This document shows, in pieces, positions 1-59,921 of a stretch of DNA of 64,000 nt (position 1 is its first letter; every line of letters starts with the position of its first letter). Below the pieces are notes generated by a model. It saw nothing but the letters and a program-made list of their open reading frames with translations. It was not told where the DNA came from and made no database searches. This stretch comes from Rebecca billardiae RCC1528. Taxonomy: Eukaryota; Protista; Haptophyta. The DNA lies in the NCBI GenBank assembly GCA_965240325.2, contig OZ251224.1, forward strand, positions 558,001 through 622,000, in the 5' to 3' direction. A program made the translations under genes and the position numbers.

Positions 1-233
1 TTTATTATCTGTCGCGCGCGCGTACGTAGTCGTATAGTAGTCAATAAGTCATCAGCGCCGTAGGTCTACCGCTGGTAAGTGGTAGCGTTCGCCAGCCGCC
101 AGCATCAAGTATCAACGCAAGCGCGGCGATGCCGATGCCGCTGATCATAAAGGCGGCAGCCATCGTCGTCGCCGTCGCCATCAAAGGGTGCTGGCCACCA
201 GCGCCGCCACAGCTCTGCGGCATGCCGCTGTCA
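1..233 (-). repeat. Degenerate direct duplicate of the 3' end and 3' UTR of the Sel1-MYND gene (copy of ~466-679); probably continues left of the window
   Basis: 1-233 aligns to 466-679 (tttattatctgtcgcgcgcgcgtacgtagtcg ... catgccgctgtca) with several 7-8-nt insertions. ORF 41..262 repeats DSGMPQS.GGAGGQHPLMATATTMAAAFMISGIGIAALAL. Confidence 0.9.
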
Positions 234-513
234 CACCTCCACGTGCCCACCTCGGACGCCACGCTGGCAGACTACACGGCGCATCGGCATGCGCTGCGCC
301 ACCACCGGCGCGCTGACGCGCAGCAGCAGGCGGCCGAAACGCGGGTGACACGCGCCGGCTCGTACAGCTGCCCCTCGCCACGTGGGGCAGCCGCCGAGGA
401 AGCTCCGCTGCTGAGCGGGGTCACTCTGGGCACGTGCAAAGCGGAGTAATAACGGCGGCGGTATATTTATTATCTGTCGCGCGCGCGTACGTAGTCGTTA
501 TAGATAGTAGTCA

Positions 514-2577
514 TCAGCGCCGTAGCTGACGCTGGTAGCGTTCGCCAGCCGCCAGCATCAACGCAAGCGCGGCGATGCCGATGCCGCTGATCATAAAGGC
601 GGCAGCCATCGTCGTCGCCGTCGCCATCAAAGGGTGCTGGCCACCAGCGCCGCCACTGCTCTGCGGCATGCCGCTGTCAACGCTGGTCGTCGTCGCCATC
701 GCCACCAACTGACGGTCGAAGCCGCTGCTCTGTGAAGTGCCGCTGTCAGCGCTGGCCGTAGTCATCATCACCATCTCAACCAAAGGGTGGCCGACGCCGC
801 TGCCCTGAGACGTGCCGCTGTCAGCGCTGTCATCGTTTATGCTGGGCGAGAGCCCTGCTTCGCACTCCTGGCACCAGCGAGTGCAGTGCGGCTTGTGCTC
901 CCTCCACGCCTGCCGCTGGTGCTCTCGCGAGCAGAAGACTGCCAAGAGGCACCGCTGGCACTTCTTCACGCCGCGGCCCGCCTTGGCGCACACCATGCAA
1001 CATGCACCCGCCACCTCCGGATCTCCAGCCAGTCGTGGCTGCCCCAGCAACTGGCAAACGACGGAAATGGATGGCTGCGATGACTGGCCGAGATGTTGAT
1101 TGGCGTTGTTCTGCTCACACCATTGCTCATGTGCGAGGCGCATGAGGCGCGCTCCCTCGTCGACGTCGCGCTCCACGCCGCAGCCCACGAGCGTCAGCTT
1201 TGCCAGCGACCCGGACCCTAAATCATTGCCCCCATCCGCTGCGAGCCGGTACCAGCGCACCGCCTCTGCGATATCGGCGTGCATGCCGTTCAGACCAAAC
1301 TCGAGGCACTGACCAAGGACGGCCTGCGCCATTGCCAAGCCCTGCTCGGCCGCCAGCCGGCACAAGCGCATCCCCTCGGCCACGTCCTGCTGCACGCCCT
1401 CGCCTCGCACAAGGCACAGACTCCACTGGAGCTGCCCTGTCGGGTCACCGTGCTCAGCCGCCAGCCGGAACCAATGCGCCGCCTCAGCCACATCTTGAGG
1501 CACGCCCCAGCCCTTGACGAGGAGCAGACCCAGTCTGCATTGCGCTCTCGCGTCACCCTCATCAGCCGCCAGCTGGTACCAGTGCACCGCCTCGGCCAAG
1601 TCCTGCGGCACGCCCTCGCCAGACTCGAGGGAGTACGCCAATTGGTACTGCGCGCTCACCAAACCCGTCTCGGCCGCCCGCCGGTACCAGCGCGCCGCCT
1701 GGTCCTTGTCCTGTGGCACGCCGTAGCCGTTGGACAAGTAAATACCCAGGTTGAACTGCGCGTCTGCGTGGCCCTCCTCGGCCGCCAGCCGGCACCAGCG
1801 CGCCGCCTCGGCCATGTCCTGCGGCACGCCGTAGCCGTTGGACAAGGAAATAGACAGGTTGAACTGCGCGTCTGCGTGGCCCTCCTCAGCCGCCAGCCGG
1901 CACCAGCGCGCCGCCTCGGCCATGTCCTGCTGCACGCCCTCGCCCGTCCTGAGGTGCCCAGACAGCTGGTACTGCGCATCTGCGTGGCCCTGCTCAGCCG
2001 CCAGCCGGCACCAGCGCGCCGCCTCGGCCATGTCCTGAGGCACGTGCAAGCCCTCCATGAGCCACGTAGCCAGCTGGAGCTGCGCGTCTGCCATACCCTG
2101 CTCGGCCGCCCGCCGGCACCAGTGCAGAGCCTCGGCCATGTCCTTCGGCACGCCCTCGCCCTCGGCGAGCAAACTGGACAGGTGGTGCTGCGCAAGCGTA
2201 TTGCCCTGATCGGCCGCCCGCCGGTACCAGCGCGCCGCCTGGTCCTTGTCCTGTGACACACCCAGGCCTGCAGCGTACCACATACCCAGTATTGCCTGCG
2301 CGTGAGCGTGCCCCTGCTCGGCTGCAAGCCGGCACCAGCGAGCGGCGCGCTCGGCATCGCCCATCAACTCGTAGAGTCGGCTCAGCGCGACCTGTGCGTC
2401 CACGAGCCCACCATCGGCCGCGACCCTGTACAGGCGGAGGGCCTCGGCCGGATCGCACGCGACGCCGTCGCCCTTCTCGAAGCGTCCTGCCAGAAGGAAG
2501 GTGGCACGCGCATCGCCTCGGGCTGACTTGCGCTGGAGTAGCCTCACGGCGGCGGCGTCATGTTCGGCCGCCATCAT
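514..2577 (-). CDS. Sel1-like repeat protein with MYND zinc finger and C-terminal hydrophobic anchor
   Basis: About 12-13 36-aa Sel1 repeats (AEQGHADAQFNL...GVPQDMAEAARW), MYND motif CMVC..CQRC..FCSREHQRQAWREHKPHC, hydrophobic tail. First ATG at 2577. Confidence 0.9.
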   Translation of the reverse strand: MMAAEHDAAAVRLLQRKSARGDARATFLLAGRFEKGDGVACDPAEALRLYRVAADGGLVDAQVALSRLYELMGDAERAARWCRLAAEQGHAHAQAILGMWYAAGLGVSQDKDQAARWYRRAADQGNTLAQHHLSSLLAEGEGVPKDMAEALHWCRRAAEQGMADAQLQLATWLMEGLHVPQDMAEAARWCRLAAEQGHADAQYQLSGHLRTGEGVQQDMAEAARWCRLAAEEGHADAQFNLSISLSNGYGVPQDMAEAARWCRLAAEEGHADAQFNLGIYLSNGYGVPQDKDQAARWYRRAAETGLVSAQYQLAYSLESGEGVPQDLAEAVHWYQLAADEGDARAQCRLGLLLVKGWGVPQDVAEAAHWFRLAAEHGDPTGQLQWSLCLVRGEGVQQDVAEGMRLCRLAAEQGLAMAQAVLGQCLEFGLNGMHADIAEAVRWYRLAADGGNDLGSGSLAKLTLVGCGVERDVDEGARLMRLAHEQWCEQNNANQHLGQSSQPSISVVCQLLGQPRLAGDPEVAGACCMVCAKAGRGVKKCQRCLLAVFCSREHQRQAWREHKPHCTRWCQECEAGLSPSINDDSADSGTSQGSGVGHPLVEMVMMTTASADSGTSQSSGFDRQLVAMATTTSVDSGMPQSSGGAGGQHPLMATATTMAAAFMISGIGIAALALMLAAGERYQRQLRR

Positions 2578-2671
2578 TCTGCGCGCTGCTTTGCGAATAT
2601 GTTTAACCAAGTGTGCACGTTAAATCATAGTACAGTTAAACTGTAAACAGGTCTTGGCAGTGTCGGCAGTC

Positions 2672-5768: not shown

Positions 5769-5817
<49 letters not shown>
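5769..5817. repeat. (TA)n microsatellite, with a shorter (TA)n at ~5723-5736
   Basis: Direct reading. Confidence 0.95.
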
Positions 5818-24162: not shown

Positions 24163-24283
24163 GCTGGCAGACTACGTCGACACGGGCGAGCGAACCCAGT
24201 CCGGTGCCTTGCCCAAGCCGGACACCTTCCAGCCGAGCCGGGCGAGCCCGGACTCGCTCAACAAAGACATCGGGTGGGCCGAT

Positions 24284-26399
24284 CAAAGGAATGAAAGAGA
24301 GATAGGACGGCAACTCCAGTGACCGAGGTCATGCGAAAGACGCCATCGTGCGGGGGGCCGCAGCCCGCTGAGCCGAGGCGCAAGCCGGGGCCGCACCCTC
24401 CCTCCTGCTCCCGGGCGCCGCTCCGCCACGGGCGTGCACGCCGCGAGTTCGACGCGCGCGGCGCTGCCATGCTGCCGACGCTTCGACCGGATCGTCGACC
24501 GGCTGCCGCCGCGCCCGCGCCCGCCGCCGAGCCCACCGGGTGCGCCACGCGCTGCGCGGCATGCGCGGGCGCCGAACTGACCGGCGCCGCCGCGAGCGCC
24601 CGCACGAGGGGCGAGAGAGTGGCAATTTCGCGGGTGTTAAGGTTTGAATGTGGGGTTGGGCCAATCCAGCTCCCATACAGACCTTAACACCCGCGAAAAT
24701 GTCCCCAGACCGTGCGCTCACGACGCGCGTATGCTACCTGCCTGGGTGCAATGAAGCTGGTTGTGCACCTCTGCGAGCGCCGTCGCCCAAGTCGAGAGAG
24801 CGGATATTTCGCGGGTGTCTTTGTTTGGGCAGTGCCCCGTGTTACTACTCTCGGCATGCACGCCCAAAGACCCGCGTTCTAGACCACAGGGCGCGAGCAG
24901 ACCACGACGCGCACACGCTGCGCGCCTTGGCACAATGCACCTGGCCATGCGACGCCCGTGCGAGCGTCGTCCGAGGCGAGAGAGGGGGCGATTCGCGGGT
25001 GTCTTTGCTTCTTTGGAGGGTTGTGCCCATGCCCTTGGCACGCAGACCTTAACACCCGCGGTTTGTCCGAAGACCGCGCGCTCACGACAGCGCGCGCGCG
25101 CTGCGCGTCGTAGTCAAGCGAATGCAGACTGCCTAGCCCCAACCAGCGTTCGGCACTGGCGGATATCGACGACGATGCTGAGTCGCGGTCGGACAGAGAC
25201 GATGGCAGTCACCTGGGTCAGATTGCAGCCTCTAGAGTCGGCACATACAACAGAGGCTTCGGACTAGGTGCTAGGCAGCGTGCGCAACGATGATGTTCGG
25301 TCTATGAAGTGAGATCGCGCCTAGCGACTACTGTCCCGCCCGTGATGATAATACCCTGGGCCACTCGGTTGCATCATGCCATTCATGGCATCGCGGTGGA
25401 TATGAATGGCACGCGCATGATGTCTCCGGCAGGTTTCCTTGAAGATGATACGAGCATCTGCCTGCGTTGGGCGACGCTCTCTAGGCTCTAGCGCGTTCAA
25501 GGATGGCGCAGTTGCTGTTGGCAGTGCTTGCAGCTAGCCGAGTCCTCCACGACGCGCAGCGCGCGCACGCTGTCGTGAGCGCGCGCTGTCGTGAGCGCGC
25601 GGTCTTCGGACAAACCGCGGGTGTTAAGGTCTGCGTGCCAAGGGCATGGGCACAACCCTCCAAAGAAGCAAAGACACCCGCGAATCGCCCCCTCTCTCGC
25701 CTCGGACGACGCTCGCACGGGCGTCGCATGGCCAGGTGCATTGTGCCAAGGCGCGCAGCGTGTGCGCGTCGTGGTCTGCTCGCGCCCTGTGGTCTAGAAC
25801 GCGGGTCTTTGGGCGTGTATGCCGAGAGTAGTAACACGGGGCACTGCCCAAACAAAGACACCCGCGAAATATCCGCTCTCTCGACTTGGGCGACGGCGCT
25901 CGCAGAGGTGCACAACCAGCTTCATTGCACCCAGGCAGGTAGCATACGCGCGTCGTGAGCGCACGGTCTGGGGACATTTTCGCGGGTGTTAAGGTCTGTA
26001 TGGGAGCTGGATTGGCCCAACCCCACATTCAAACCTTAACACCCGCGAAATTGCCACTCTCTCGCCCCTCGTGCGGGCGCTCGCGGCGGCGCCGGTCAGT
26101 TCGGCGCCCGCGCATGCCGCGCAGCGCGTGGCGCACCCGGTGGGCTCGGCGGCGGGCGCGGGCGCGGCGGCAGCCGGTCGACGATCCGGTCGAAGCGTCG
26201 GCAGCATGGCAGCGCCGCGCGCGTCGAACTCGCGGCGTGCACGCCCGTGGCGGAGCGGCGCCCGGGAGCAGGAGGGAGGGTGCGGCCCCGGCTTGCGCCT
26301 CGGCTCAGCGGGCTGCGGCCCCCCGCACGATGGCGTCTTTCGCATGACCTCTGCCCGCGCCGCACTGGGAGTTGCCGTCCTATCTCTTTCATTCCTTTG
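24284..26399. mobile_element. Non-autonomous foldback DNA transposon, P/Galileo-like: ~830-bp TIRs, ~440-bp spacer, 7-bp TSD
   Basis: Arms 24284-~25111 and ~25549-26399 are near-identical reverse complements. Termini CAAAGGAATGAAAGAGA...TCTCTTTCATTCCTTTG. TSD GGCCGAT at 24277-24283 and 26400-26406. Confidence 0.9.
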
Positions 26400-27129
26400 G
26401 GCCGATGCCCCGATGGCCGTGCAAAAGCTCACCGCGATAGCTGCGCCACCCCTCACTCCGCGTCACGCTTTTCATCCCGTCGCCCCATCCGTGCCAGGGA
26501 GCAGCGTGTAGTGCACGCCCCCGTAGCATCGAGGTGGCACCCCAACAAGCGACCTGCCCGGGATCACTCGAGCGATGCGCCTCACACTCGCCGACCTGCC
26601 GCCAGCCGCGGCCCGTGGTGACTGGTGTCTGGTGGCCGCTGTGTAAGCAAGACTAAAGACACGCTGAATGGGCGGTACAGGTACATCCGGCACGGACTGA
26701 TACGCAGCCCCGGGTGTGCTAGAGTCTTTTTGACTCCGCAACACGGCGAGGCGCGCACTTCATGCCGCCGGATCAGACCGGGCCGCCGCGCCGCCGTGAC
26801 CGTGACCGGCTGAGGCTGACGCGGCGGGCCTGACCGAACCGCGGCCCGCGCGTTGAACTAGACTCGTCAGACTGATCAGTAAGGGTCCTACAGACCCCCG
26901 GTAGCAAGTCGACTTTTGACGGCACGGTCTCCAATGAGGACCGACCGACCGACCCGTGACGACACGCGGTCTTGGCTGACACTCGGACGCAGACCGGGTC
27001 CAGATGCCTTGGAGCAGCCCCGAGCGGACGAGCCCGGCGCCGCCGGCATCAGATGGCGGCGTCCAAGCGCTGCGACTCGCCGGGAGATAGGGCGGGAGAT
27101 AGGGCGCGGACTCAGCCCCGGCGGCGTCG

Positions 27130-31332: not shown

Positions 31333-32037
31333 TCAGAGCATGTCGTGGTCGTTCGGGCCGGCCTCCAGCGACTGCGCGGGGTGCTCGACCTCGCACTTGA
31401 AGCTCGCGTCGACCACGCCCGCCGTGGCGATGTCCACGTGCATGATCTGCTGGCCGAGCGCGCACGTGCCGAAGAAGCACGACGTCACGACCGAGAGCAG
31501 CACCGACTCGTTGATGCCGTACCGCTTGACGAGCTGCATGCGCGACCAGAGGACGACGAGCCAGAAGAAGACGTGCGGGAGCGCGTTGCGCGCGAGCTCG
31601 GCCACGCTGTACTCGCGGTACGTGATCGTCTGCCCGTCTTCCAACTCGATCTCGACTGGCGCCGGGAAGAGGCCTGCCATCGCGAGCGAGAAGAGCAGGT
31701 AGACAACGCACGCTGCCGTCGTGGCGGCCGCGGCCTGCATGTACGTGCAGATGTTCGCGCGGTGGAGCATGCGGCCCCAGCCGCAGCAGCACAGCGGGAA
31801 CACGAAGATCGGGATGGGGAACGTCACGATGCAGTCCGCAAGGTCGACGTGCCAACGTGCGCCGGGCGCGGTTGGCGTCGGCCGGCCAGGTCGGGCGGGG
31901 GTGGCGTCGACGCCGAGGCGGGACGGCGCATGCGAGACGGGCGCGTCGGCGTACCCGTCCGAGAGCTCGGCCGCACCCCGCTCCCCCGGCCGTGCCTGGT
32001 CGGAGGGATAGGCGGGCGGCCCAGAGCCGATCTCCAT
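31333..32037 (-). CDS. PLAC8-family Cys-rich membrane protein
   Basis: WHVDLADC, FPLCCCGWGR, RMQLVKRYGI, CFFGTCALGQQIMHV. Confidence 0.8.
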   Translation of the reverse strand: MEIGSGPPAYPSDQARPGERGAAELSDGYADAPVSHAPSRLGVDATPARPGRPTPTAPGARWHVDLADCIVTFPIPIFVFPLCCCGWGRMLHRANICTYMQAAAATTAACVVYLLFSLAMAGLFPAPVEIELEDGQTITYREYSVAELARNALPHVFFWLVVLWSRMQLVKRYGINESVLLSVVTSCFFGTCALGQQIMHVDIATAGVVDASFKCEVEHPAQSLEAGPNDHDML

Positions 32038-32261
32038 GCTCGCTGCCCAGGCCGGCGCAGCCGCCGCCGCTCGCCAGCTGCTCACCAAGGACTGGGGGGG
32101 CCGAGTCCGGTTGGCAGTCTGACAACATGGTGATGAAGCGGAAGCACCGGACAGCCCACTTTCGCTTGCCCCAGCGAGCGAGCGTGGCGCAAGTTGCCGC
32201 GTGCGGAAGTGTGGCCGGGCCAGTGGCGCCGAAAAGCAGCCTGCCCGTGCAATCGGCGGCG

Positions 32262-33840
32262 ATGCGCATGCGCCACCCGCCGCCGCGCGCGCTGCGCGCG
32301 GCGCTCGTGCTGCTCGTGGGCTGCGCCACGCACGTGCAAGCCTTCGGCAACGTGGGCACGCTCGGCGACTGCGACTGCCCCATCCACACGCCGCCATCCT
32401 TCACGATCGAGCCGGGCTGGGGCACGCACGTGTGCGCGCGCTCGCACCGCTGGCGCACGGCGATCTGCGAGGCGACGGTGCCCGCCTGGTCGGACGAGCT
32501 CGCGCCGCACGAGCTCGCCGAGGCGCTGCGCGCGGCGGGCGCGACCGCGCCCGTCCACCCGGCGGCGCTCGGCGCGCAGCTGCGGCCGCGCGCGCACTGG
32601 GGCCCGCATGGCGCGCCCCCGCGCGCGCTGCGCCGCCGGCTGCGCGAGGCGGCGCTCGGCGCGGCGAGCGCGCGGCGCGCGCTCGCCCCCGCGACCGAGC
32701 TCGTCGCCGCGTACGACTTCACGCCCGCCGAGGACACGGCCGGCTGGACGGTCCGCACCGGGCGCGGGCTGAGCGCATGGACCGTCAACCCGGCCGGCGG
32801 CGCCGACGGCTCGGCGGGCTACCTGTGGTTCAAGTGCACCGAGCCGAACGCGCGCGCGATCATCTCGACGGACGAGCTGCCCGCCAACCGCGCCTACTTC
32901 GCCTACCGGCTGCACGGCGCCGACCCGGGCGGCAAGCTGCTCCTCTCCATCTCCGCGCACGGCTCCCGCAAGTACAGCAGCGCGTGGGTGAGGGAGGGCT
33001 GGGGCGAGGGTCGCTGGGCGTCGGGCTCGCTCGAGCTGCAGGACGCGTCGGAGTGCGGCGCGCCGGGGCTGGTGTCGCTGCGGATCACCATCAGCTGCGG
33101 CCCGGAGCCCGCGGGCGCCGAGCTCGGCTTCGACCGCCTCGAGTTTGTGCGCGAGTGCGGCGCGGCGCGTGAGCGAGACATGACGGTGCCGGCGGGCGGC
33201 GGCGCTGCGCCTGCGGTCTCGTCGCCGCCGCCCAGCCCGTCGCCCTCGCCGCCGCCCAGCCCGTCGCCCTCGCCCTCGCCCTCGCCCTCGCCCTCGCCCT
33301 CGCCCTCGCCCTCGCCCTCGCCCTCGCCCTCGCCGCCGCCGGGCGCGCCGTCGCCGCACCCGCCGCCCTCACCCTCGCCGCGCCCGCCGCCGCCGCCGAG
33401 CCCGCGGCCGCCGCCGCCAAGCACGCCGCCGCCGCGTCCACCGCCGTCGCCGCCGCCGCCCGCGCCGCCGCCGCCGCCGAGCCCGCCGCCGCCGCCGCCC
33501 TCGCCGCCGCCGCCCTCGCCGCCGCCGCGCCGGCCGGTCGTGCACCACCCGCCGCCGCCCTCGCCCTCGCCGCCGCCGCCGCCGCCCTCGCCCTCGCCGC
33601 CCGAGCCTCCGTCGCTGCCGCCGCCGAGCCCGCTGCCGTCGCTGCCGCCGCCGCCGCTCTCGCCCAAGCCGCCGTCGCCGCCGCCGCCGCCGCCCCCGGA
33701 CCCGACGCCGCCGCCGACGCCGCCGCCACCGAGCCCGCCGAGCCCGCCGCCGCCCTCGCCCTCGCCGCCGCCCCACCCGCCGCCCTCGCCGCCGCCGCCG
33801 CCGCCCTCGCCCACGCCGCCCGCGCCGCCGCCGCCCTCGT

Positions 33841-33873
<33 letters not shown>

Positions 33874-36800
33874 GCGCGCTCGTGCTCGAGCGGCTCGACC
33901 CGTCGCACCCGCCGCGCTTCGAGTCGCTCGCGCTCGCGGTGGGGTACAACTTCACGTGCACGCTCACCGCGCGCGGCGCGCTGCACTGCTTCGGCGACAA
34001 CCGCCTCGGCCAGGCCGGCGCGGGCGTGGCCGACACGTTTGTCGCGCTCTCGGCGCGCGCGGTCGCGCTCGGCACGACGCGCGCGCTCGCCGCGGGCGCG
34101 GCCGCGCCGTTCGGCGGGCTGCGCGTGCCGGCGCGTGTGCGGCTGCTGACGGCGGGGCACTCGCACGCGTGCGCCGTCACGTGCGACGGCCGCCTCAAGT
34201 GCTGGTGCGCGCACGCCGCCCGGCGCGCGCGCCGCGCCGCGCCGCGCCGCGCCGCGCCGCGCCGCGCCGCCGCTCACGGCCCGGCCGCCCGCCGCAAACG
34301 CTCGCGCGCGCCGCGCCGCCGCCGCCGCGCTCAGGGGCGCCAACGTGGTGGGGCAGCTCGGGCTGGGCGACACGCGCTCGCGCGGGACGAGCGCGGCGGA
34401 GATGGGCGACGCGCTCCCGGCCGTCCCGCTTGGCGGCGCGCTCGCTCCACACGACCACTGGCCCCGCCCACAGGTGGTGCAGGCGTCGGCGGGCGGCGGG
34501 CCGTGCTCGCCGCTGCAGCACTCGCTGCTGCCGCTCGGGCGCACGTGCGCCGTCGACGCGAACTACCGGCTCAAGTGCTGGGGCGACAACGCGTGCGGCC
34601 ACCTGGCGCAGCCGCTCGACTCGGGCGCGTGCGCGGCCGGCGCCGACGCCGCGCGCCGCCGCCTCGCCGCCGCGCTCGAGCCGAGCGGCGCGCAGTGCGC
34701 CGCGCTCGGCGCTCTCGGCGTGCGGCCGCAGAGGGCGCCTGGCGGCGGCCTTGCGCTGGTCTACGCGAATGGCGGGCTGGGCGCGTTCGCGGTGGCGGCG
34801 GTGGACGCGGCGCGGCACGGCGTGGTGCTGCGCAACATGCGCCAGTGCGACGGCGCCACGCTCGCCGCGCTCAACGCCGCGCTCACCGTCGCCCTGCCCG
34901 GCGTGCGCGCGGACGCCAGCGCGCGCACCAGCGCGCGCAACCCGTGCGGCTGGCGGCTGCACGGCGGCGCCGGCTGGGGGCTCGACTTCTGGGACGGGGT
35001 GGAGGTGAGCCACGCGGCGCCGCGCGGCGCGGAGAAGGCGGTGGGCTTTGGGGAGGCCGACGAGGGCGAGGCCGTCGCGACGAGCGTGGGCTCCGCGCCG
35101 CCGCCGCCGCCGCCGCTCGCGCGCGAGCCGGCGGCGGCGGGTGTCGGCGCGGCGGGCGCGGGCGCGGCCGGCCCCGCGCCTGTCCGCGCGCCGTGCGCCG
35201 CGCTGGGCGACGAGCCGTCCGAGATGGGCGACGCGCTGCCGTTCGTCGAGCTCGACGCGGGCTCGCCCCTCGTGTACGCCGTGAGCGTCGGCGTCACCTT
35301 CGCCTGCGCGCTCTCCGGCCCCGCGGCCCAGCCGGGCGGGCGGCCGTCTGCCCATTGGTCTGCGCACGAGAACGTGGCGTACGGTGGCGGGCGGGTCAAG
35401 TGCTGGGGGGACAACACGTTCGGGCAGCTGGGGCAGAACGACCACGCGCCGATCCGCGGCTCGGTGCGCGGCGCGGCGTGGATCGACTTTGGCGGCCGCG
35501 CCGCGCTGCAGGTCTCCGCCGGCTTCGCGCACGCGTGCGCCGCGCTGCTGCCTGCCGGCGCGGACGCGGCGGCCGCGGACGAGACGGCGCCTCCCGAGGT
35601 CGTGTGCTGGGGGGCGAACGGCGCGGGCGAGCTGTGGCGGGACGCGGCGGGCGAGGACCGGCGGTACGTGGGCGACGACCCGGGCGAGATGCCGGCGCAG
35701 CTCGTCCCCGCGCCCGTGCGCACGCGCCCGCTCCTGAGCGCGCAGGCGTGGCAGGCACAGGCGCACTCGACAGTCGCCGAGGCGACGCTGGCGCCGTGGG
35801 TGAGCGCTGGCTCGGCCGATGCGTCGCTGTGCCTGCGCGACGGCGTGCGCACGTGCGCGGCGGCGGCGAAGACGGGGGAGGAGGCCGCGTGCGCGGGCGC
35901 GCGCACGCCGCCGCTCCAGGCGCCGCGCGTCTGGGCGCGCGCCATCAACCTCGTCAACATCTCGGCGGCGGGCGGCGAGGAGCGCTGCCTGCGAGCGCCG
36001 CGCGCGCCGCCGTCGCGCCGCGCTGGCGGCGCTGAGCTCGAGCTGGTGCCGTGCACGTCGCACGACGAGCGGCAGCTGTGGGCGTACGACCACGTGACGC
36101 ACGCGTGGGTCGCCGCCGCCGCCGAGCTGCCCGACACGTGCCTCGGCACCAGCCAGCCCGGCGGCGGCCGGCTGCTCGCCGTGCCGTGCGCCGAGGCCGC
36201 TCGGGTGGACCCGGAGGCGGGCCGAGCGGTCGCGTACTGCCCGCTGGGCGGCGGCGAGGCGGAGGCGGGGGCGGGGCTCGCGCTCGGGCTGGGCTTCGAG
36301 TCCGGCGCGGACGCGGCCAACCCGATCCGCGCGGTGCCGCCCGGCGCGGGCGTGTGGGCCGCCCCCGGCCCCGCGTGCGTCGAGGCGCTCGGCGGCGCGT
36401 TCGAATGCGCGGAGGTGCGGTGTGAGTGGCCGTTCCATGGCTGCGAGCCTCGGGGCGGGGAGGAGGAGGCGCGGGAGCCGCAGCAGCCCAAGGCGCCGCC
36501 GCCGCCGCCGCCGCCGCCGCGCCCGCCGCCGGGCACGCTCGGCACGCCGGGCGGCGCGCGCGTCGCGCCGCCGCCGCCGCGGCCGCCGCCGCCGCCGCCG
36601 CCGCGCTCGCCGCCGCCCGCGCCGCCGCCGCCGCGCGCGCGCGCGATGCCGCCGCCGCCGTCGCCGCCGCCGCCGGGCGCCGAGCCCGAGCCGTGCGCCG
36701 AGTTTGCGCCCGCGCCGCACTGCAACGCGGAGCACTTCCGCCGGCAGCTCAAGGCGCGGGGCGAGCGCCTCCCCAAGGAGTGCAACTGCGCCGACGCCAT

Positions 36801-37440
36801 CAGCGCGTGCGAATCAGACGCCGAGCTCGCCGCCAAGTTCAACTCGGCCGCGTGCGCGGCGCGGCTGCGCGCGCACCCTCGGCTGCGGTGGGACTGCCTG
36901 GCGCACGCGCTCACGCCGGTGATGCGCTTCACGCCGAGCGAGTGCGTCACGCAGTGGCACCCGTTTGACAGCCTCGAGCTCGGCTCCGCCGCGGACGGCG
37001 CCACCGCCTCCGAGGCCGCCGCGCGCACGTGCGCCGCGCAGCGCTACCCGTCGCCGCTGCTGCAGCCCGCGCCGTGCGCGGAGGATGCGCGCGACTGCTG
37101 CCTCGAGTACGTGGAGTGCTCGGTCGGGCCGGGGTTCTACGGAGGGAACCACCCGGCGAAGACCACGCGGTGCGACGCGTCGCAGCCGCGGCAGTGCTGG
37201 TACGTCGACACCCTCTCCGCGCCGCGGTACAACCCGAGTGCGGACGGCAGCGCGTACTACTCGGCTTTTTACGAGCGCGAGAAGGGGCGCAGGGGGTGGT
37301 CGCCTCTGGCGCAGTGCCTCACGACGCCGGAGACGGCGGGCGGCGGCGGCGTGGAGCTGGGCGCGGAGGGCGGCCTGCCGCGCGCGCACGCGCCCGCGGG
37401 GCCCCACGCCCCGCGCGCCTCGCCGCCCCTCGAGAAGCAG

Positions 37441-37471
<31 letters not shown>

Positions 37472-38477
37472 AGTCCTCCGCCGCGGCCGCGCCGCCCTAC
37501 GCATACGCCTACACGGGCGCGCAGCTCGGCCAGCCGCTGCCGGCCGAAGCGGCGGGCGGGGGCGGCACGGCGGGCGTGCTCGGGCCGTACGTCGAGCCCT
37601 CCGCCGTGCTGAACGGCACGTGGCGCTCGCTCGGCGCGAGCGTGATGGACGCGGTGCTCTGGTCCGCCCCCGTCCCCACGCCCGGCTGCTCGCGCGAGCT
37701 GAGCGTTGCCGCGTACGCCGTCGACATCTCGATCTCGTGGGCCAAGGCCTCGCCCGACGCCGACCTGACGATCGGCGTGTCGGACGGGGCGAGCATCGTG
37801 GGGCTGATGAAGACGGACGGCGACACGGCGCTGCTCTACGTCGGCGGCTGGGCGAGCGACCGCTTCGACCCCTACCAGTACTGCTGTGCCAAGGCCGTGG
37901 GCGCGCACGCGGGCTCAGAGTCGGTCAGTCTCCGCTTCGAGTGGCCCGCGGGCGGCGGCAAGGGCACCGCCTCGCTGCGCAACAACTACGGCGGCAGCAG
38001 CGCGACGTGGCACCACCTGCGCAGGCTCGACGTCTCTCAGGGGCTGCGCGTCTGGCTCGTGGGCGAGCAGCCGGGCGAGACGTACACGGTGCAGAGCGTG
38101 GCGTTTGGTGGCAGCTGCGAGGACGCGCCGCTGCCGACGAGCCCGCCGCCGCCGCCCAGCCCCGCGCCGGGCGCGCCGCCGCCGCTGCCGCCCGCGCTGC
38201 CGCCGCCGCCGGTGGCCTCGCCGACGCCGCCGGCGAGCCCGCCGAGCCGCCCGCCGCCGCCGCCGCCGCGCGCGCCGCCGCCCGCGCACCCGCCCGCGCC
38301 GCCGCCGCCGCCGCCACCCTCGCAGCCGCCGCGCGCGCCGCCGCCAACGCCGCCGCCGCCCTCGCCCGCCCCGCCGCCGCCGCCCGCGCCGCCGCCGCCC
38401 TCGCCCTCCTCGCCGCCGCCGCCGATGCCGCCGGCGCCGCCGCCGCACGGGCGGCCGCGCTCGCCGCCGCCGCCGCC

Positions 38478-38509
<32 letters not shown>

Positions 38510-40930
38510 GCGCGCCGCCGCCAGCGCCGCCGCCGCCGCCGCCGCCGCGCGCGCCGCCGCCAGCGCCGCCGCCGCCGCCGCCGCCGCGCCCGCCGCCGCC
38601 GCCGCCGCCGCCGCCGCGCTCGCCGCCGCCCGCCGCGCCGCCGCCGCCGCGCTCGCCGCCGCCGCCGCCGCCCGCGCCGCCCCCGCCGCAGCCGCCGCAG
38701 CCGCCGCCCGCGCTGCAGCTCGGCGCGCCGTGGCGCGGCGACGACGGCCTCCTGCCGATGGCCCGGTACGCCACCTGGGAGTGCAACGCTCTGCGCACGC
38801 AGCAGTGGAGCGGGGACGCGCTGCTGCCCGAGGGGATCGCGTTCTGGAAGGTGCGTCCGCGCGCGGCGCGCGCCCACCTCGCCCGCTCCCGCGCGCCCAC
38901 GGCGTGCGCGGCCGCGCGAGCGTGCGCGCGTGCGGTGCGCGGCGGCGGCGCGCGCGCGCACCGCGCACGGCGCGCACGCGCCTTGCCGCGCTCACCGCCC
39001 TCCGCCGCGCGCGCCCCGCTGCCGCCGCGCGCGCGCAGGAGGTGTCGCGCGCGTGCGCGGCAGGCTCGTCGCTGTGCCGCGTGCTCTTCCCCGCGCACGA
39101 CCCGGTGGCCGCGCGCGCGCTCGCCGGGCACAACTACTGCGTGCAGCTGCACGACGTGCTCGGCCAGTGGGCGCTCACGGCCGAGCGGCGCGGCGTGGGC
39201 TGCCCCGCCGAGATGCGCTCGTGCGCCGCGCGCGCCGCGCAGCCCGAGCGCGCCGCCGCGCTCGCGCACACGTGCTACGACCCCGACGACTTCAACGCGA
39301 CGATGCTGCCGAGTGCGCGCGCGCGCGCGCCGCGCCGCGCGCCGCGCGCGCGGCGCGACAGCCGGCGCCGCCGCGCGCGCGCGCCCGCGGCCCACCGCCG
39401 CCGCCGCCGCGCCCGCTGCTGCTGCCGCGCAGGCCTGAGCGCCGTCTTCGGCCACGGCTGCGAGCGCTCGCCCTCCGACTGGGCGGAGCGGCTCTCCTTC
39501 CAGTACGAATGGCTGCTGCGGTGCAACGACCACAACTCGAGGGTGCGCGCCGCGCCGGCGCGCGGCCGCGCGCCGCGCGCCGCGCGCCGCGCGCGGCCGG
39601 GTGGCGGCGGCGGCGGCGGAGCGCGCGCGCTCACCGCCGCGCTCGGCGTGCCCTCCGCGCGGCGGCGCCGTCACAGGTCTGCCTGCTGCCCCACCGCGCG
39701 CACTTTGCCACGCCGCCCGCGCCGCACCCGCATCCGCCGCCGCCAAACCCGCCGCCGCCGACGCCGCCATCGCCCACGCCGCCGCCGCCGCCGCGCCCGC
39801 CGGCCGCGCCCGCGCCGCCGCTGCCCGCGCTCGCGCCCGCGACGCCGCCGCTCCCGCCGCCGCCGCCGCCGCCGCCGGCCGTGAGCCGGCCCCACTTCAA
39901 GCGGCAGTGCGCGCCCGGCACGCCCAAGGCCTCGTGCGCCCGGCGCGAGTGCACGCCCGCCTCGAGCTGCCGCCTGCGCTACGTCGACCCGCACACGCGC
40001 GCGCCCGGCGCGGCGCGCAGCGCGGGGCTGTCTTGCCTCGTGTACCGGACGCGCGCGCCGCGGCCCGGCGAGGCGGCGCTCGGCGGCGCGGGCGCGGAGG
40101 GCGGCGCGGCGCCGCTCGTGCACGAGCTGCTCTCGCAGCCGTGCGACGCCGTCGCCCTCGACGAGCTCGCCAACCGCGGGCAGGAGCTCTCCGCTCAGTT
40201 TGGCGCGTGGGCGCTCGACGAGGCGGGTCGCTTCCGGCCGGTCGACCCGGCCGCTGCCGAGTTTCTGCCGGGCTCCCTCTGCCTGGGCGAGGCGCCCTTC
40301 TCGCTGGCGAACTGCTCGGAGGCGCAGGGCGGCGCGGGCGCGTTCGCGCCCACCGCGCCGTACTACGAGCACCGCGCGCACTGCTTCGACACGGGCGCCC
40401 CCGCCGGCTCGGCCGCGTCGGGCGCGCTCTGCGTGAGTGCCGCAGACCCGCTGCAGCCGCTGAGGCCGACGCCGCACGCCGTGCACATGGGCACGTGGGG
40501 CGACGACGACGACGACGAGGAGGAGGAGGAGGAGGACGGCGGCGGTGGCGGGGCGGTGGACGTGCCTGTGGGCGTGGCGGGAGGCGAGGCGAGCGCGCAG
40601 GCCGCGCTCGCGCGCGAGGCAGGCGCGCACGCACGCGCGCCACACGCTGCCGGCCGTGCCGTCGGCGCTGTCGGCGCTGTCGGCGCTGCGCGCGCTGTGC
40701 TCGGTGCACTCGGCGGCACCGCTCTCGTTGCAGCCGTGGCGCTGCTGCTTGTGGGCGCGGCGCTGCGCACGCCGCGCCGCGCGGCCTTCTGGCCGCTGGC
40801 CTCGTGGGCGGCACCCCGCGCGCCGCAGCACCCGGCGCAGCACGCGCGCGACTGCTATTCGGCCGACGGGCGCGCTGCTGCGCACAGCGACGAGCCTTGG
40901 AGCGGCGGCCGCGGGCCCGCGATGCTGTGA
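32262..40930 (+). CDS. ~2,698-aa cell-surface protein: signal peptide, extensin-like SP/PPP rods, RCC1-like repeats, ricin-B-like modules, C-terminal TM; introns 34205-34334, 38851-39038, 39313-39432, 39543-39676
   Basis: The five exons sum to 8097 nt in frame. (SP)n and SPPPP blocks; LKCWGxNxxGQLG repeats; ELVPCTSHDERQLWAYD; hydrophobic LVAAVALLLVGAAL near the end. Confidence 0.85.
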
Positions 40931-41439: not shown

Positions 41440-44400
41440 TCAGCGGCGCGTGCGACTGCTCGTCGCAGCCGCGCCGGCGGGCGCAGCCGAGGCGGCGGTG
41501 GGGGCGGCGGCACGCGGGTCGGCGCCGCCCGCGTGCGCCGCGGGCTGCCCGTCCGCCTCCGGCGGCTCGCCCTCGAGGGACTGTGCCAGCGTGTTCGCGC
41601 GCTCAGACAGCACGTCCGCGAACGCGCGCGCGAGCGGGCGCGCGCGCTCGGTGCGCGCGTCCGCCTGCACGCGCGCAGACACGCGGCGCAGCAGCGCGAT
41701 GCCGAACTTGCGGCCGAGCGAGCCGACGAGCGGGAGCTGGCGGCGCAGCCGCGACTGCGGGTCGGTGACCTCGGGCCACACGTCGCGCGGCGACACGCCC
41801 GCAGCCGAGAGCATCTCGAGCGCGCCCGCGGGGCTGAGCTCGGCCGCGCCGCCGGCCGCGCCGCCGGCCGCGCCGCCGGCCGAACCGCCGGGCTGCTGCT
41901 GCTGCAGCCTGGGCGCCAGCGCGTCCCACACCTTGCCCAGCGCCTCGAGCGACTCGAGGTCGTCCGTGTCCGCGGCGCCGAGCGAGGGCACGAGGTCCGC
42001 GAGCTCGTCCAGCCACTCCAGCGGGCGCCGCAGCGGCTCGGGCACGCCCACGTCGAAGGGCAGCGCGCGGCGCGCCTCCTCGGCAAGGCGCTTGGGCGCG
42101 CGCAGCGCCTCGCCGAGCGCGCTCGCCGGGCCCCAGCTGACCGCCTCGCTCAGCCGCGCGCGCACGGCGGCGTCGGCGAGCTTCGCGGCCTCCTCGACGA
42201 GGATCTGCTGCACGTACCCGCCGCGCTCGGCGAGCAGCAGCTCGACCAGCTCCGCCTGCGCCTCCGCCGCGTCGTCGCTCACGTCCCCCGTCGAGGCGGT
42301 GTAGGCGGTGAAGCCGTCTGACATCTCGAGAAGCTTGCTCAGCCCGCGCGCCGAGCCGGAGGGCGAGATCGGGCCGCCGCTGCCGTCCGGGGCGAAGGCG
42401 GGGCCGTCGGCGGTCTTCGCGGCCGAGCCGTACACCATCGAGCGCAGCGCCGCCTTCGCGCGCGGCGAGTCGTCCGTGAGCAGCCGGCGCGAGAGGTACG
42501 GGAACGCCTGCTGCACGATCGAGTAGTCGTCGTCCACCGACAGCCCGATCCCCTCGAGCGTCGAGAAGGCGCGCGACACGTACAGGATGTACGGCGGCAC
42601 GCGGAAGAGCTCGCGGTTGCGCCGGGACATCTCCTCCACCACGTTGGTCACGCCCGCCACGTCGACGCCCGCGTCGGCGAGCTGCGCCTGCGCGCTCAGT
42701 GGGCGGCGGGCGCGGGCGCGCGCGCGGGCGGGGCGGCGCGCGCTCGGCGCGGGCGCGCGCGCTCGGCGCGGGCGCGGGCGCGCTCGGCGCGGGCGCGCGC
42801 GCGAGTGCGCGTGTGCGCGCAAAGGCCGCGGCGCACCTTCATCTTCTCGCGCATCTCCTCGCGCGCCTTCTCGCGCAGCTCGTCGACGGAGAGGTCCTCG
42901 CCGTACCGCTCCGCGAACTCCTGCAGCACGCGCTCGCCCATCTTCTTGGGCCCGCCGCCCTGCGAGAGCTGCCGCAGCACGAAGGAGATCCCCTCGCCCA
43001 TGCCCGAGCGGCGCACCTCGTCCACCTTGTCCGGCGGCGTGAAGCCGAGGTTGACGAAGTCGTCGGGGATGGCGTCGAGGTCCTCGGCGTTGACGTGCGC
43101 GATGAACTCGATCAGCGAGTACTGCAGGTCCGACGGCACGGGCAGCGTCATCCCCCAGTCCAGCACGCACAACCGGCCGTCCTCGGTGCGCAGCAGGTTG
43201 CCGGGGTGCGGGTCGCAGTGCAGCACGCCCGTGTCCAGCAGCATCGTCAGGTACGCGTTGATCGCGACGGCGCAGAGGCGGGGCACGTCGGGCGAGGCGT
43301 CGCGGTCGAGCCGCGTGCCCTGCACCCACTCCGTCGTGAGCACGCGGCGCGTGCTCAGCTCGCGCACCACCTCGGGCGCGGTGACCGCCGCGAGCTGCCT
43401 CGACTCCATCGCGCGCAGGAACGTCTCCGTGTTGGCCGCCTCGTGCACGTAGTCGGTCTCCGCGACGAAGCCGCGGCCCCACTCGTCGACGAGCGCGCGC
43501 GCGAGCTCGATGTCCTGCGGGAAGGTCTGCCGCCCGTTCGCCAGGTTGGACACGCGCACCTGCACCGGCGCGAGCAGCCGCAGGATGTACAGGTCGAGCG
43601 CGATCTCTGCGAGGATGCTCGGCCGCTGCACCTTGACCGCCACCTCGCGCCCGTCCTTCAGCGTGCCGCGGTACACCTGGCCGATGGAGGCGGAGGCGAT
43701 GGGCTCGTCCGAGAGCGCGTCGAAGACGTCGGAGAGGTCGTCCGTCCGCAGCTCCCGCGCGAGGATCGCCCGCGCGCGCTCCGACGGGAAGGGCGGCACC
43801 GCGTCCTGCAGCTGGCGCAGCTCGAGCGCATACGCCTCAGGGATCAGGTCTGTGCGGATCGAGAGCGCCTGCCCCAGCTTGATGAACGTGGGGCCGAGCT
43901 GCGTCGCGAGCGCGAGCGCCTCCTTCGCGCGCTGGGCCTCGTTCTGCTCCAGCTTGCCCAGCCGCCAGTCGAGCAGCAGCTTCGTGTTGAACGCCGCCGT
44001 GAGGTACGTGAGCCGCAGCAGCCGGCCGACCACAAGCGGCAGCCGCTTCGAGTAGAACCGCTCCGCCTTGGCCGCGTCGTACGCGCTCGAGCCCGAGGGG
44101 TACGGCGTGCCCTCGGCCATCGCCGGGAGGGCCAGCGCGCCCAGCACCGCCGCGCCCGTCGCGAAGCCGGCCACGAAGCGCGCCTCCGCCGACGTGGCCA
44201 GCGTGGCGATGAAGGGCTCGACAGCGCTCAGCACGCGCGACCCCAGCTCGCGCGACGCGTCGGCCTCCGTGGGGAGGCGCGAGACCGTGCTGGAGAAGGT
44301 CTGCATCGACTCGAGCGCGCGCTCGGCCCACGGGCCCGCCGCGGCCGCCGCGTCGTCCAGCGGGCCGAGCGAGGCCATCGTGGGTGCGGTGGCCGCGCCG

Positions 44401-44534
44401 GCAGCGGGCATGCGCCGCGTCGCCGGCGGCGGCCGCCCGGCTACGCGGGGCGTGGAGAGCGCGCGGGGCGGGGCGAGGCCCCAGGCGGACGTGCACAGCG
44501 AGGCAATCGCCACGAGCGCGAGAGCCTCGCGCAT
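41440..44534 (-). CDS. ABC1K/UbiB atypical kinase, plastid-targeted; intron 42688-42836
   Basis: LGPTFIKLGQALSIRTDL, PIASASIGQVY, VAVKVQRP, LHCDPHPGNLL, LDWGM. Signal peptide followed by an R/P/A-rich transit-like region. Confidence 0.93.
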
Positions 44535-44807
44535 CGTGCCGGCGTGCGCGCTCGCTCGGTGCAGCTGCTGCGCGCGCGCGTTCGTCGCACGTGTACGACG
44601 AGTTGCAGCAGTGCGTGGGATGCGCGGCCAGTAGCCTGGCGCCAGATGCACGAAACTTCTCAGCCGCTGGGCGCAAGGTCGGAAGGTGTCGAGCGGCTTC
44701 GAGGACGGTGCAGTGGGCACACGCGCTGCACTTCCCGCGCGACCGTCCTGAGCCGGAAAATCCCGTGCGCTTTTGCATGCGATGAGTGAAACAATATGAC
44801 CTCCTGG

Positions 44808-45538
44808 CTTGCAAACCAAGCCCCCCAAAACCCCTCGCGCGGCGAAAGGCACCGTCCCTTAAGGAGTCGATGCCTTCCGGGAGCTCTTTGAATACGCGTT
44901 GCGCGTGCGCGGGCACTCCCGGACAGCCGCCGCCAAGAAGGCCAGCCTGCGCGCGCCCTCCTCGGTCGTCCCCCGCGGCGCGTGCGCGTCGAGGCGCATG
45001 ACGGGCTTTGCCGTGCACGTCGTGCCCGTGCTCGCGGCTCATGCACGCCTCACGACCGAGATGCATGTCTTGCGCGCCCTCCTTTGGCTCGCACTGCGGT
45101 CTCCTCGCCGACAGCCTTGTGATCACGCGCGCCGCCATTTCAACCGGTTGCTGGCCTGCCAGCTGTCGAGCGTGTGTGTGCGGTCTGATCGATGTCGGCA
45201 TGGCTGCCGGCGAAGCAGTGATATTGAGTACACCCATGCCCATCTCGCAGAAGCAAAAAAGCCGACCTTTGAATGCCCCAGGGGCGCACGCGTGCCCATC
45301 ACGCTCGTCGGACAGGCCTTCTCCAGAACTGCGCTTGCCATCCGGCAGGTCTCTGCGCGCGGAGAGGGCGGCGAGGGCGTCGGCGAGGCGGCACGATTGC
45401 TGCCTACGGGTCTTCTAGCCCCCACAAAGTGCCCGCGCACGGCTGTCACGCCCGCATGCGGCCTTGGGAGCGCTGCGCAGGCGGGCCCACGCGTCGCCCA
45501 GTGCTCGCCATCCCGTTTTGGGGGGCTTGGTTTGCAAG
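44808..45538. mobile_element. 731-bp non-autonomous DNA transposon with 24-bp perfect TIRs and a 7-bp TSD
   Basis: CTTGCAAACCAAGCCCCCCAAAAC at 44808-44831 and its reverse complement at 45515-45538. CTCCTGG at 44801-44807 and 45539-45545. Confidence 0.88.
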
Positions 45539-46027
45539 CTCCTGGGCGCCTGGCGGCTTGGCAGGCGTTCCCTTCTCTCGGTGTGGTGCTCACCAGCGAT
45601 GAACGGCTGTGAGCAGAGCTGCTCCCCTCCGCGAGCTCAGAATGATGCCTGGACAGCCCTCGCGCGAGCACGACCTCCTAGGCGACAGCGAATGTCCAGG
45701 TAGCTTCGCGTACGTCCCCTCTCCGATGGCGATGAGGCTGCTGCCCATCGTCGTGAGATGCGCGCGCAAAGTGCGGGCCGCATCCTTCGAGGCCAGCCGC
45801 GCGTGCTGCGCGCAGCACGCAGAGCAGCAGTTGAGCTCCGCGCATGATGGAGCGCGTGACGACAGCGAGCGCCGTTGCTCTCGCCTGGTTGCCCTGCGGC
45901 TGGTCACACGGCTACCATGAAAAACGGAAGTGCTTCCCGCCGCCATCGCCGAACTTGGACCCTGCCGCCGATCGACAGCGACCGGGGCGGGCTCTCAGCC
46001 GCTCATCAGGACCGACGCGGCCACTGG

Positions 46028-51528: not shown

Positions 51529-52510
51529 GCGCCGCGCGCCGCGCTGGCGGGGCGGCCGGGACCCACGCGCGCCTTCGAACCCCCGGCGCCCGCGTGCTCA
51601 TCGGCTTCCTCCGCCTGCGAGTAGCCCACGACCGCGCCCGCCGCGCTCTTTGAGTGGGTTGACCGCGCCCGAGCCTGCTCGCCGCCGAGCGCAGGGATGA
51701 GTTGAGCACGGCGCGAGGCGGCGATCGCGGTCGGGCGATCGCATGAGCCCATTCGGGCCCCATCTGCCACGGCGCGACCGCTTCAGCATGCGTATGTGAC
51801 GCCACTTGTCATGGTTGTCTCATGTCGGGTAGCAGGTGAGCACTGTCGGCCAGCATGTCCGCGCGCGCGCGCGCGCTCGCGCAAGGCTATACGGGTCGGA
51901 TGCCGCTCCGTGGCGTCTCGTGATGTCTGCACTACGCAAACTGGCTGGCACGATTGGTCCGCATCTGTAGTTATGCGACGCCTGCCGTGTTCGCGACGAG
52001 AACTCAAGCAAGTTCTTCTGGCGACCAGAGTTGCCGTCAGCATTGACGCACGTTGCGAGCTGGCAGAGCAGTGAAGGTCATGCCCTTGCTGGCCCACGCT
52101 GGGCAATACACGGTAATCAGCATGTCCTGATGCCAACTGTGATGTGTTTCCGACCCGTCTGGCCCTGCACAGGCGCGGCGCGCGCGGACACGCTGGCCGA
52201 CAGTGCTCGCCCGCTACCCGACATCCATGACAAGTGGGGTCACATACGCATTCTGAAGCGGTCGCGCCGTGGCAGATGGGGCCCAAATGGGCTCATGCGA
52301 TCGCCCGACCGCGATCGCCGCCTCGCGCCGTGCTCAACTCATCCCTGCGCTCGGCGGCGAGCAGGCTCGGGCGCGGTCAACCCACTCAAAGAGCGCGGCG
52401 GGCGCGGTCGTGGGCTACTCGCAGGCGGAGGAAGCCGATGAGCACGCGGGCGCCGGGGGTTCGAAGGCGCGCGTGGGTCCCGGCCACCCCGCCAGCGCGG
52501 CGCGCGGCGC
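51529..52510. mobile_element. Foldback element with ~335-bp inverted arms and a ~310-bp spacer; no TSD found
   Basis: ~51529-51866 is the reverse complement of ~52178-52510, with a few mismatches. Mirrored ORFs 51366..51770(-) and 52269..(+) share their sequence. Confidence 0.75.
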
Positions 52511-52903: not shown

Positions 52904-53920
52904 TTATGCGTGCGCCGTCACAGTGATGGGCTGCAGCTTGTCGAGCGGCAGCTCAGCAGCAAGGAACTCAGCGTAGTCGTCAGCTGTGAACTTAGACACG
53001 ACTGAGACCGCAAAGTCCTTATGGCAGAACAGGATGTCGTCTTCCTTGGTGAGCATCTTGCCGAGGAAGCCGCCTTTCCAATCGCCGTCCAGCCCAACGG
53101 CGGCCGCCACCTGCGGCTGGTCGAGCAGCTCGAGCGGCACCGCGTCCGCGCTCGCAAACTGCGAGGTGAGCGGCGGCGCTGCGTTCGAGCACAGCAACAC
53201 GAGCTCGTACCCGCGCTTGAGGGCGAGCACGATCTTGGTTCGCATCTCGGCCCGCGCATCCTCGAGCGACATTGTCTTCTTCATGTTCACCTCGACCACG
53301 TACTTCTTCAGCTCGACCAGCTGGTGCCCGGAGTAGGAGTAGAACGTCTCCAGCGGCGTGTAGCCATCCCCAGAGCCCGTGCGGTCGAGCAGCAGAGGCG
53401 TCTTGCCCTTGTCGCGCGCCGCATCGAGCGCGGCCTGCAGCATGTCGAGCTTGCACGACCACACGCCGTCGGTCGCAAAGGACTGGGTCGCAGCCACGCG
53501 CTCGGCCGCCCGCGCCCCCTCCGCCGCCTCCCGCTTGGCCGCCTCCGCTGCCCTGAACTCATCTACGGCGCTCACAAAGCCCACATGCCATGCGACAAAC
53601 TGCTCTTCGCGCACGGCCCCTTCGGCCGCTCCCGATCCGGCCTCGCGGTACTGCTTCTTGATGTACAGCCCCATCTCGTTCTCTCTGAGGTAGCCCGCCT
53701 CCTCGTGGACGTCCTTGATCACCTGCGCAAACTCCTTGAGATTGAGCGCGCCATCCTGGTCCTCGTCGTACTGCGTGAAGACGGCCTTGCTGCGCTCCTG
53801 CTGCGCGCGGCGCGCGGCTTCCTCGGGCGAGACAGCCTCTGGCTCCTCGGCTGCCTTCGCCTTGGTGCCGCCACTCTTCGGCTTCGTGCCGGCCGGCTTC
53901 GCCTGCTTGACGGGCGGCAT
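52904..53920 (-). CDS. EF-hand protein with a C-terminal domain resembling the IQANK1/dynein AAA5-like region; likely flagellar
   Basis: EF loop DEDQDGALNLKEF; GKTPLLLDRTG..LETFYSYSG..MRTKIVLALKRGYELVL. The family match is from memory. Confidence 0.65.
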   Translation of the reverse strand: MPPVKQAKPAGTKPKSGGTKAKAAEEPEAVSPEEAARRAQQERSKAVFTQYDEDQDGALNLKEFAQVIKDVHEEAGYLRENEMGLYIKKQYREAGSGAAEGAVREEQFVAWHVGFVSAVDEFRAAEAAKREAAEGARAAERVAATQSFATDGVWSCKLDMLQAALDAARDKGKTPLLLDRTGSGDGYTPLETFYSYSGHQLVELKKYVVEVNMKKTMSLEDARAEMRTKIVLALKRGYELVLLCSNAAPPLTSQFASADAVPLELLDQPQVAAAVGLDGDWKGGFLGKMLTKEDDILFCHKDFAVSVVSKFTADDYAEFLAAELPLDKLQPITVTAHA

Positions 53921-54045
53921 GGGAGGACCGACAGGACTTTTCAGTGGCCACCAACCTCCCGGACCCGGTGGGAAGCTTCGGAATCTCGCGGCGGCGGCGC
54001 AAGCGGCGAGCCAGCGTGTGCATCCATCCCCTTGAGCTCGTGCCA

Positions 54046-57744: not shown

Positions 57745-57836
57745 GGGTCCGGCGCGGGCGCCGAGCGACCACCGCGCCCGTTGCAGAGGCTTGCAGCGGC
57801 CTGGTTGAGTGAATGAGTGGTAGTTGGTCGGCGACG

Positions 57837-59808: not shown

Positions 59809-59921
<113 letters not shown>

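Follow-up and report, generated by a model that had tools for sequence, protein, structure and literature searches.

Short insertions that repeat their neighbouring bases can be left by several described processes. Among short insertions, small tandem duplications are the most frequent class, and they originate from staggered breaks by fill-in and non-homologous end joining (NHEJ) (Schimmel et al., 2021; PMC8355091); that paper cites Messer and Arndt (2007) for an origin of small tandem duplications from staggered breaks. The hallmark of DNA polymerase theta (Pol theta) end joining is local copies interspersed with bases of undeducible origin (PMC12426944). Classical transposon footprints consist of retained target-site duplications with altered junction bases (PMC5873905, PMC5499845), and footprints of Stowaway/Mariner elements are mentioned in PMC4561436. 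Here, these processes were compared with a group of micro-insertions in a partial duplicate of the 3' end of a Sel1-MYND gene, located at the start of a 64-kb stretch of the haptophyte Rebecca billardiae RCC1528 (contig OZ251224.1, positions 558,001 to 622,000; hereafter the window, in whose coordinates all positions are given). An earlier note on this DNA had attributed the insertions, each described as a 5-nt duplication around a 2-3-nt spacer, to a dedicated and undescribed cutting and repair process acting on non-coding DNA. The analysis reported here tentatively favours error-prone break repair.

The parent gene (514-2610, minus strand) encodes a protein with nine Sel1 repeats and a zf-MYND finger, whose C-terminal end is a membrane helix followed by a basic tail; the gene also contains three repeats of ~69-75 nt. 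Within this intact gene, copy B (466-679, minus strand) is the segment that matches the duplicate, and runs from ~55 codons before the stop codon to 48 nt into the 3' untranslated region (3'UTR). Its stop TGA (514-516) is followed by a further in-frame TGA (511-513). Copy A (1-233, minus strand) is a frameshifted partial duplicate of the gene 3' end, which extends from the last repeat unit through the membrane helix and tail into at least 48 nt of 3'UTR; it lies on the same strand as the parent gene, 232 nt downstream of copy B. The two copies form a direct duplication (89% identity counting gaps, E ~1e-83), with no third copy in the window. On its left, copy A is truncated by the window start. 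Both copies end with AATAAA, the canonical polyadenylation signal, on the minus strand (1-11 and 466-476); should a poly(A) tract stand to the left of the window, a retrocopy with a truncated 5' end would be a possible origin of copy A.

The description of copy A as non-coding needed qualification: it derives from coding sequence with the frame shifted, and is crossed by a plus-strand open reading frame (ORF; 48-446), so that it is perhaps not purely non-coding. This ORF runs antisense through copy A and on into unique spacer, and closes with the tandem stops TAATAA (447-452). The region 234-446 has a coding-like GC content by codon position (0.74/0.60/0.79). The ORF had no Pfam match, and may be the end of a convergent gene.

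Differences between the copies were read from a MAFFT alignment and an affine global alignment. Under both alignments, copy A carries two clean 7-nt insertions, exactly as described in the earlier note. At 73-84, TGGTA (73-77)-AG (78-79)-TGGTA (80-84) stands against a single TGGTA (533-537) in copy B; at 104-115, ATCAA (104-108)-GT (109-110)-ATCAA (111-115) stands against a single ATCAA (557-561). The latter insertion sits at the C-terminal end of the membrane-helix codons. A third case that had been listed with them, AGTCA-ATA-AGTCA (39-51), varies with the alignment: only that of the earlier note makes it an 8-nt insertion in A, at the cost of +1 and +4 in B, while the affine alignment gives +5 (CAATA) in A and +1 and +1 in B. 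Both alignments stand as equally valid. The list had left out a complex replacement (64-70), where GTCTACC in A faces CTGAC in B (526-530) and makes short inverted repeats in A (GTAG-gt-CTAC and GGT-ct-ACC). Copy B, which had been taken for an intact sister, has extra bases of its own in the 3'UTR (498-507): a T (498/499) and ATAG or A (500-507), both slippage-type tandem repeats. Outside the indels, the copies differ by a single substitution (A211 vs B657), with none across the ~73 aligned bases of A 1-110.

At each clean site, the neighbouring 5-mer accounts for five of the seven inserted bases. The 7-nt units are identical to their neighbours at 5/7 and 6/7 positions only, and B is without a repeat tract there. 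Two other notations describe both insertions: a 3-nt duplication around AAGT (GGT-AAGT-GGT and ATC-AAGT-ATC), or a 7-bp duplication with two altered junction bases. The 5-nt stagger that had been proposed is one of several possible readings; the 7-bp notation, which matches the target-site duplications of two candidate transposons of the window (24284-26399 and 44808-45538, see below), is another.

Simple replication slippage was rejected for the 7-nt insertions, in agreement with the earlier note: the second unit differs from the first at two junction bases, B is without a tract, and a slipped primer would find no homology 7 nt upstream. An identical unit or an existing tract was found only for the extra T and ATAG of copy B. 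Perfect 7-nt duplications that were later substituted were rejected in view of the background divergence (~1 in 200); because background substitution is essentially nil, the junction mismatches arose along with the insertions. When a template for the spacers was sought within 400 nt on both strands, the longest recurring string that contained a spacer was 5 nt.

Like the products of staggered-break fill-in and NHEJ, the insertions directly repeat the immediately adjacent bases and need no repeat tract. Unlike the classical products, which are perfect duplications, they contain 2-3 new junction bases. Pol theta end joining likewise makes small insertions (<25 bp) from flanking sequence, sometimes with unmappable or misincorporated bases (PMC12426944), and in such insertions direct and inverted copies both occur, as the inverted repeats of the 64-70 block do here. 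Unlike Pol theta products, the templated part here is just 5 nt and directly adjacent, and no deletion accompanies the two clean sites. Excision footprints of hAT and MULE elements resemble the insertions in that both duplication copies are kept, the changes are found at the joint only and the net gain equals the duplication length; they differ in that P-nucleotide extensions and an element are absent from these sites, and three events in 70 bp would be unusual. In the canonical footprint of Tc1/mariner elements, the target-site duplication is followed by 2-3 nt of the element end and by the duplication again, and this family duplicates TA only. The layout of repeat, 2-3-nt spacer and repeat is the same here, but the repeats are 5 nt rather than TA, and the spacers AG, GT and ATA have no consistent match to the ends of the window elements (CA...TG and CT...AG).

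For a composition-matched random 7-nt insertion, the chance of creating an exact repeat of at least 5 nt at offset 7 was P=0.03, and the joint chance was ~1e-3 for two such insertions and ~3e-5 for three. With P=0.03 for each, two or three insertions of this form are not a product of chance. The events are also clustered: all 5-6 indels fall within A 33-110 (78 nt), and the other 123 nt carry one base difference (p ~0.02-0.05 under uniform scatter). Indels outnumber substitutions 5-6:1, the reverse of ordinary neutral decay. Because the indels are confined to 78 nt and substitution is almost nil, they probably stem from one or a few error-prone events and not from slow independent decay. Repeated local hops of a transposon, or changes confined to the selection-free part of B, would also fit the cluster.

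The direction of change was judged from the coding plausibility of the two copies. In copy B, a hydrophobic helix of 22 residues is followed by a tail of net charge +3 and a double stop, and the GC content at third codon positions is 48% in the tail frame of copy A (rare AT-ending codons) against ~80% in the gene; these features favour B as the ancestral state. Outgroups were sought by four routes. A search with the whole protein yielded Sel1-repeat proteins only, and neither the gene, nor its start-codon variants, nor the neighbouring ORFs had an exact match. A HMMER search with the 108-residue C-terminal module against 1.84 billion representative proteins gave one spurious Sushi-repeat match, and a degenerate DNA pattern for the membrane-helix peptide had no match in metagenomes. 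Barring chance, a process that makes imperfect duplications is implied whichever copy is ancestral.

Our preferred reading, held with somewhat less than even confidence, is that the micro-insertions are scars left by error-prone break repair, in a duplicate of the gene 3' end that is partial and non-functional. Each insertion would be a short imperfect local duplication, in which five bases were copied from adjacent sequence and 2-3 bases were added that have no mappable template. Such a scar could form by either of two routes: a short staggered break could be filled in and then closed by end joining with nucleotide addition, or templated synthesis of the Pol theta type could be aborted. One or a few error-prone events were probably involved, possibly including the event that made the duplicate. 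In favour of break repair, the two clean insertions have an identical architecture. The replacement block at 64-70 supports templated repair as well, because inverted repeats are its other known flavour. As their longest recurrence is 5 nt, the spacers fit either bases added without a template as a staggered break was filled in and joined (PMC8355091) or the misincorporated and unmappable bases known from Pol theta products (PMC12426944). Staggered-break fill-in with added nucleotides and the excision footprint, which the earlier note had offered as candidates, were retained as the two best mechanistic readings. Both are known processes, and the claim of an undescribed dedicated system found no support: staggered-break fill-in, Pol theta end joining and transposon footprints have all been described already.

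Several points weigh against break repair. The scars of such repair span a broad size range, so that insertions of 7 and 7 (perhaps 8) nt would be a coincidence under it. The two candidate transposons of the window also have target-site duplications of just this length, 7 bp. The differences are limited to the tail and the 3'UTR, which also matches what selection on B would permit. The insertion in A is favoured by coding plausibility only, because the searches above gave no outgroup.

The two candidate transposons are unrelated inverted-repeat elements. The larger (24284-26399, 2.1 kb; 24277-26406 including the flanks) is a candidate non-autonomous DNA transposon, foldback- or MULE-like, with ~815-nt terminal inverted repeats that are 98% identical and start CAAAGGAATG. 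It is flanked by a perfect 7-bp direct repeat, GGCCGAT (24277-83 and 26400-06), which lengthens to 9 bp when the element is taken to end 2 nt earlier on the right. Its arms (24284-25097 and 25579-26399) resemble copies A and B in their balance of differences (3 indels, 1 substitution): besides AG slippage, there is a complex replacement block near 24317, and 16 nt are duplicated in tandem at 25563-25601. The smaller (44808-45538, 731 bp; 44801-45545 including the flanks) is a candidate DNA transposon resembling a miniature inverted-repeat transposable element, with perfect 25-nt terminal inverted repeats that start CTTGCAAACCAAG and a perfect 7-bp target-site duplication, CTCCTGG (44801-07 and 45539-45). 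It is inserted at the 5' edge of an ABC1-kinase ORF (42699-44858, minus strand). A 19-mer from its inverted repeat matched five metagenome contigs, none with extended homology. In one of them, a soil-metagenome contig, positions 1110-1139 (L006) match window positions 44799-44827 over 30 nt with one mismatch, where the flank of the 731-bp element meets its inverted repeat; homology does not extend beyond these 30 nt, and the shared sequence can form a small hairpin (CTTGG...CCAAG). The enzymes for which the earlier note had recommended a search, a transposase or integrase that makes 5-bp target-site duplications and PolX or Pol theta polymerases, have no gene in the 64-kb window, nor does any other transposase or integrase; genes for Ku and Lig4 are likewise absent from it.

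The insertion form was then surveyed across the window. Exact 5-nt repeats occur 117 times at offset 7 and 129 times at offset 8 (246 in total, ~3.8 per kb), which is 1.16x and 1.26x the local Markov expectation, respectively. With low complexity masked, the counts at offsets 7 and 8 were 82 and 76, the average for offsets 10-40 that are not multiples of 3 was ~54, and offset 14 reached 78. At 7-8 nt there is thus only a weak short-range excess (1.2-1.3x) and no sharp peak, and the window offers no sign of a process acting genome-wide. The motif N3-AAGT-N3 is not enriched in the window (5 of the 179 AAGT sites, two of them being the clean insertions), and was discarded as an invariant insert. 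Elsewhere in the window, recent duplicates differ by the 16-nt tandem duplication mentioned above, by a 7-nt TTGTCTC, by GC- and AG-repeat slippage and by one replacement block, in which the arms are unlike in sequence and in length. The TTGTCTC (51815-51821) is extra in one arm of an inverted duplication (51529-51900 and 52149-52510; 372-nt arms, 94% identical, around a 248-nt centre, with no target-site duplication), and has the looser form TGTC-tca-TGTC. These duplicates, too, differ by indels of the local-duplication type, which speaks for break repair; insertions by local duplication are the norm in the window, as in other eukaryotes (PMC8355091).

Because two elements of the window have perfect 7-bp duplications at their target sites, footprints of excision compete seriously with error-prone break repair as an explanation, although on balance they are unlikely. 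Cut-and-paste DNA transposons with 7-bp (7-8-bp) target-site duplications would have left both duplication copies behind, with junction bases altered during repair of the donor site, and repeated short-range hops would account for the cluster. The duplications of the two elements, which are unrelated to each other, equal in length the net gain of 7 nt; in the 7-bp notation the changes are confined to junction-adjacent bases, and insertions would be tolerated in a non-functional copy A. As in hAT-type footprints (PMC5873905), a base has been exchanged for its complement at four of the seven changed positions, but this complement/transition pattern is within chance (~0.05-0.06, by hand arithmetic on the sequence). 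Two or three cycles of insertion and excision would be required within ~70 bp, MULE-type elements often excise precisely (PMC5499845), and no transposase gene lies within the window. Two specific origins of the spacers were rejected: a hairpin origin, since the predicted palindromic P-nucleotide extensions mismatch and no true ones are seen at the joints, and retention of transposon ends, since only AG, of the spacers AG, GT and ATA, matches one element end. A reversed direction of change is improbable. In that case, an A-like state would be ancestral, and two or three deletions of 7-8 nt would have occurred in B, through slippage or through microhomology between pre-existing 5-nt direct repeats. 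Deletion between short direct repeats is a very common mechanism of small deletion, and all the differences lie in the only selection-free part of B, past the membrane helix and in the 3'UTR. The frequency of exact 5-nt repeats at offsets 7 and 8 (~3.8 per kb) also suits this direction, which would need an ancestor with at least two offset-7 repeats. For an ancestor of 233 nt, the probability was P=0.07 for at least two offset-7 repeats and P=0.06 for at least three at offsets 7 and 8; limited to the 110-nt region, these values fall to P=0.02 and P=0.009, which weighs against this reading. The working gene would also have suffered repeated frameshifting deletions, the rare AT-ending codons in the tail frame of copy A speak against its being the original, and the imperfect 7-nt repeats would still lack an origin.

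An assembly or polishing artefact is very unlikely. Read mapping and polishing are least reliable in duplicated segments, and this one is short; the indel:substitution ratio is unusually high here, as it is between the arms of the 24284-26399 element. Against this, the insertions are internally consistent in form, and we know of no sequencing platform for which 7-nt imperfect duplications are a typical error. An independent assembly of run ERR14847148, taken from the Logan collection of public sequencing runs, was 100% identical to the window over 6179 nt (53413-59591), a stretch that lies outside the insertion site. It is highly improbable that a lineage-specific nuclease or transposase with a 5-7-nt stagger acted recurrently on one short unconstrained tract, the breaks being sealed with 2-3 untemplated AT-biased bases; such an agent might be a domesticated or locally hopping element with a 7-bp duplication, or a programmable nuclease, and if it exists its past activity could be traced across the genome by its stereotyped 7-nt scar. 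The dedicated undescribed process of the earlier note, in which a staggered-cut nuclease and an untemplated polymerase would act on non-coding DNA and leave stereotyped scars of five plus 2-3 bases, is barely credible. Two or three events share a like form, AAGT is found in all three, and the slight overrepresentation of 5-nt repeats at these two offsets (7 and 8) points the same way. However, there are two clean cases only, offset 14 is equally high, N3-AAGT-N3 is not enriched, no candidate gene lies within the window, and known mechanisms suffice.

The setting of the duplicate is eukaryotic: the window carries tubulin-family, actin-like, SMP/C2, CRAL-TRIO, ABC1-kinase, alliinase-like and MFS genes and (TA)n microsatellites, at 58-85% GC. 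The nearest named homologues of the ABC1 kinase are chloroplast-type proteins of Ochromonas, Prymnesium, diatoms and Octactis (62-68% identity). By its sequence, the source is a plastid-bearing alga that is like ochrophytes (photosynthetic stramenopiles) or haptophytes, and the collections searched contained no close relative with a name. A divergent protein of the tubulin/FtsZ family (443 residues; 56416-57744, minus strand) has environmental sequences, at ~50% identity, as its only relatives above 31%; its nearest named relatives are from chytrids and Phytophthora (~30%). The stretch 32000-40000 is of extreme GC content (80-85%), with long low-complexity arrays of the CCG/CGC type, and contains a 1762-codon ORF (34150-39435, plus strand) with faint RCC1-like matches only. 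Perfect (TA)n and TTATA microsatellites (5769-5817, 59813-59919 and 63929-63996) lie in AT-rich intergenic islands of a genome otherwise of ~70% GC. Scans of the window for tRNAs and against Rfam gave no match.

The present evidence amounts to two clean events in one pseudogene fragment, which known mechanisms can explain. The two inverted-repeat elements with 7-bp duplications are the more useful by-product of the analysis, and make the footprint hypothesis testable at the scale of the whole genome. If the pattern held genome-wide, it would be a readable signature of the break-repair pathway, or of the transposon family, that shapes small insertions in a poorly studied and very GC-rich algal lineage.

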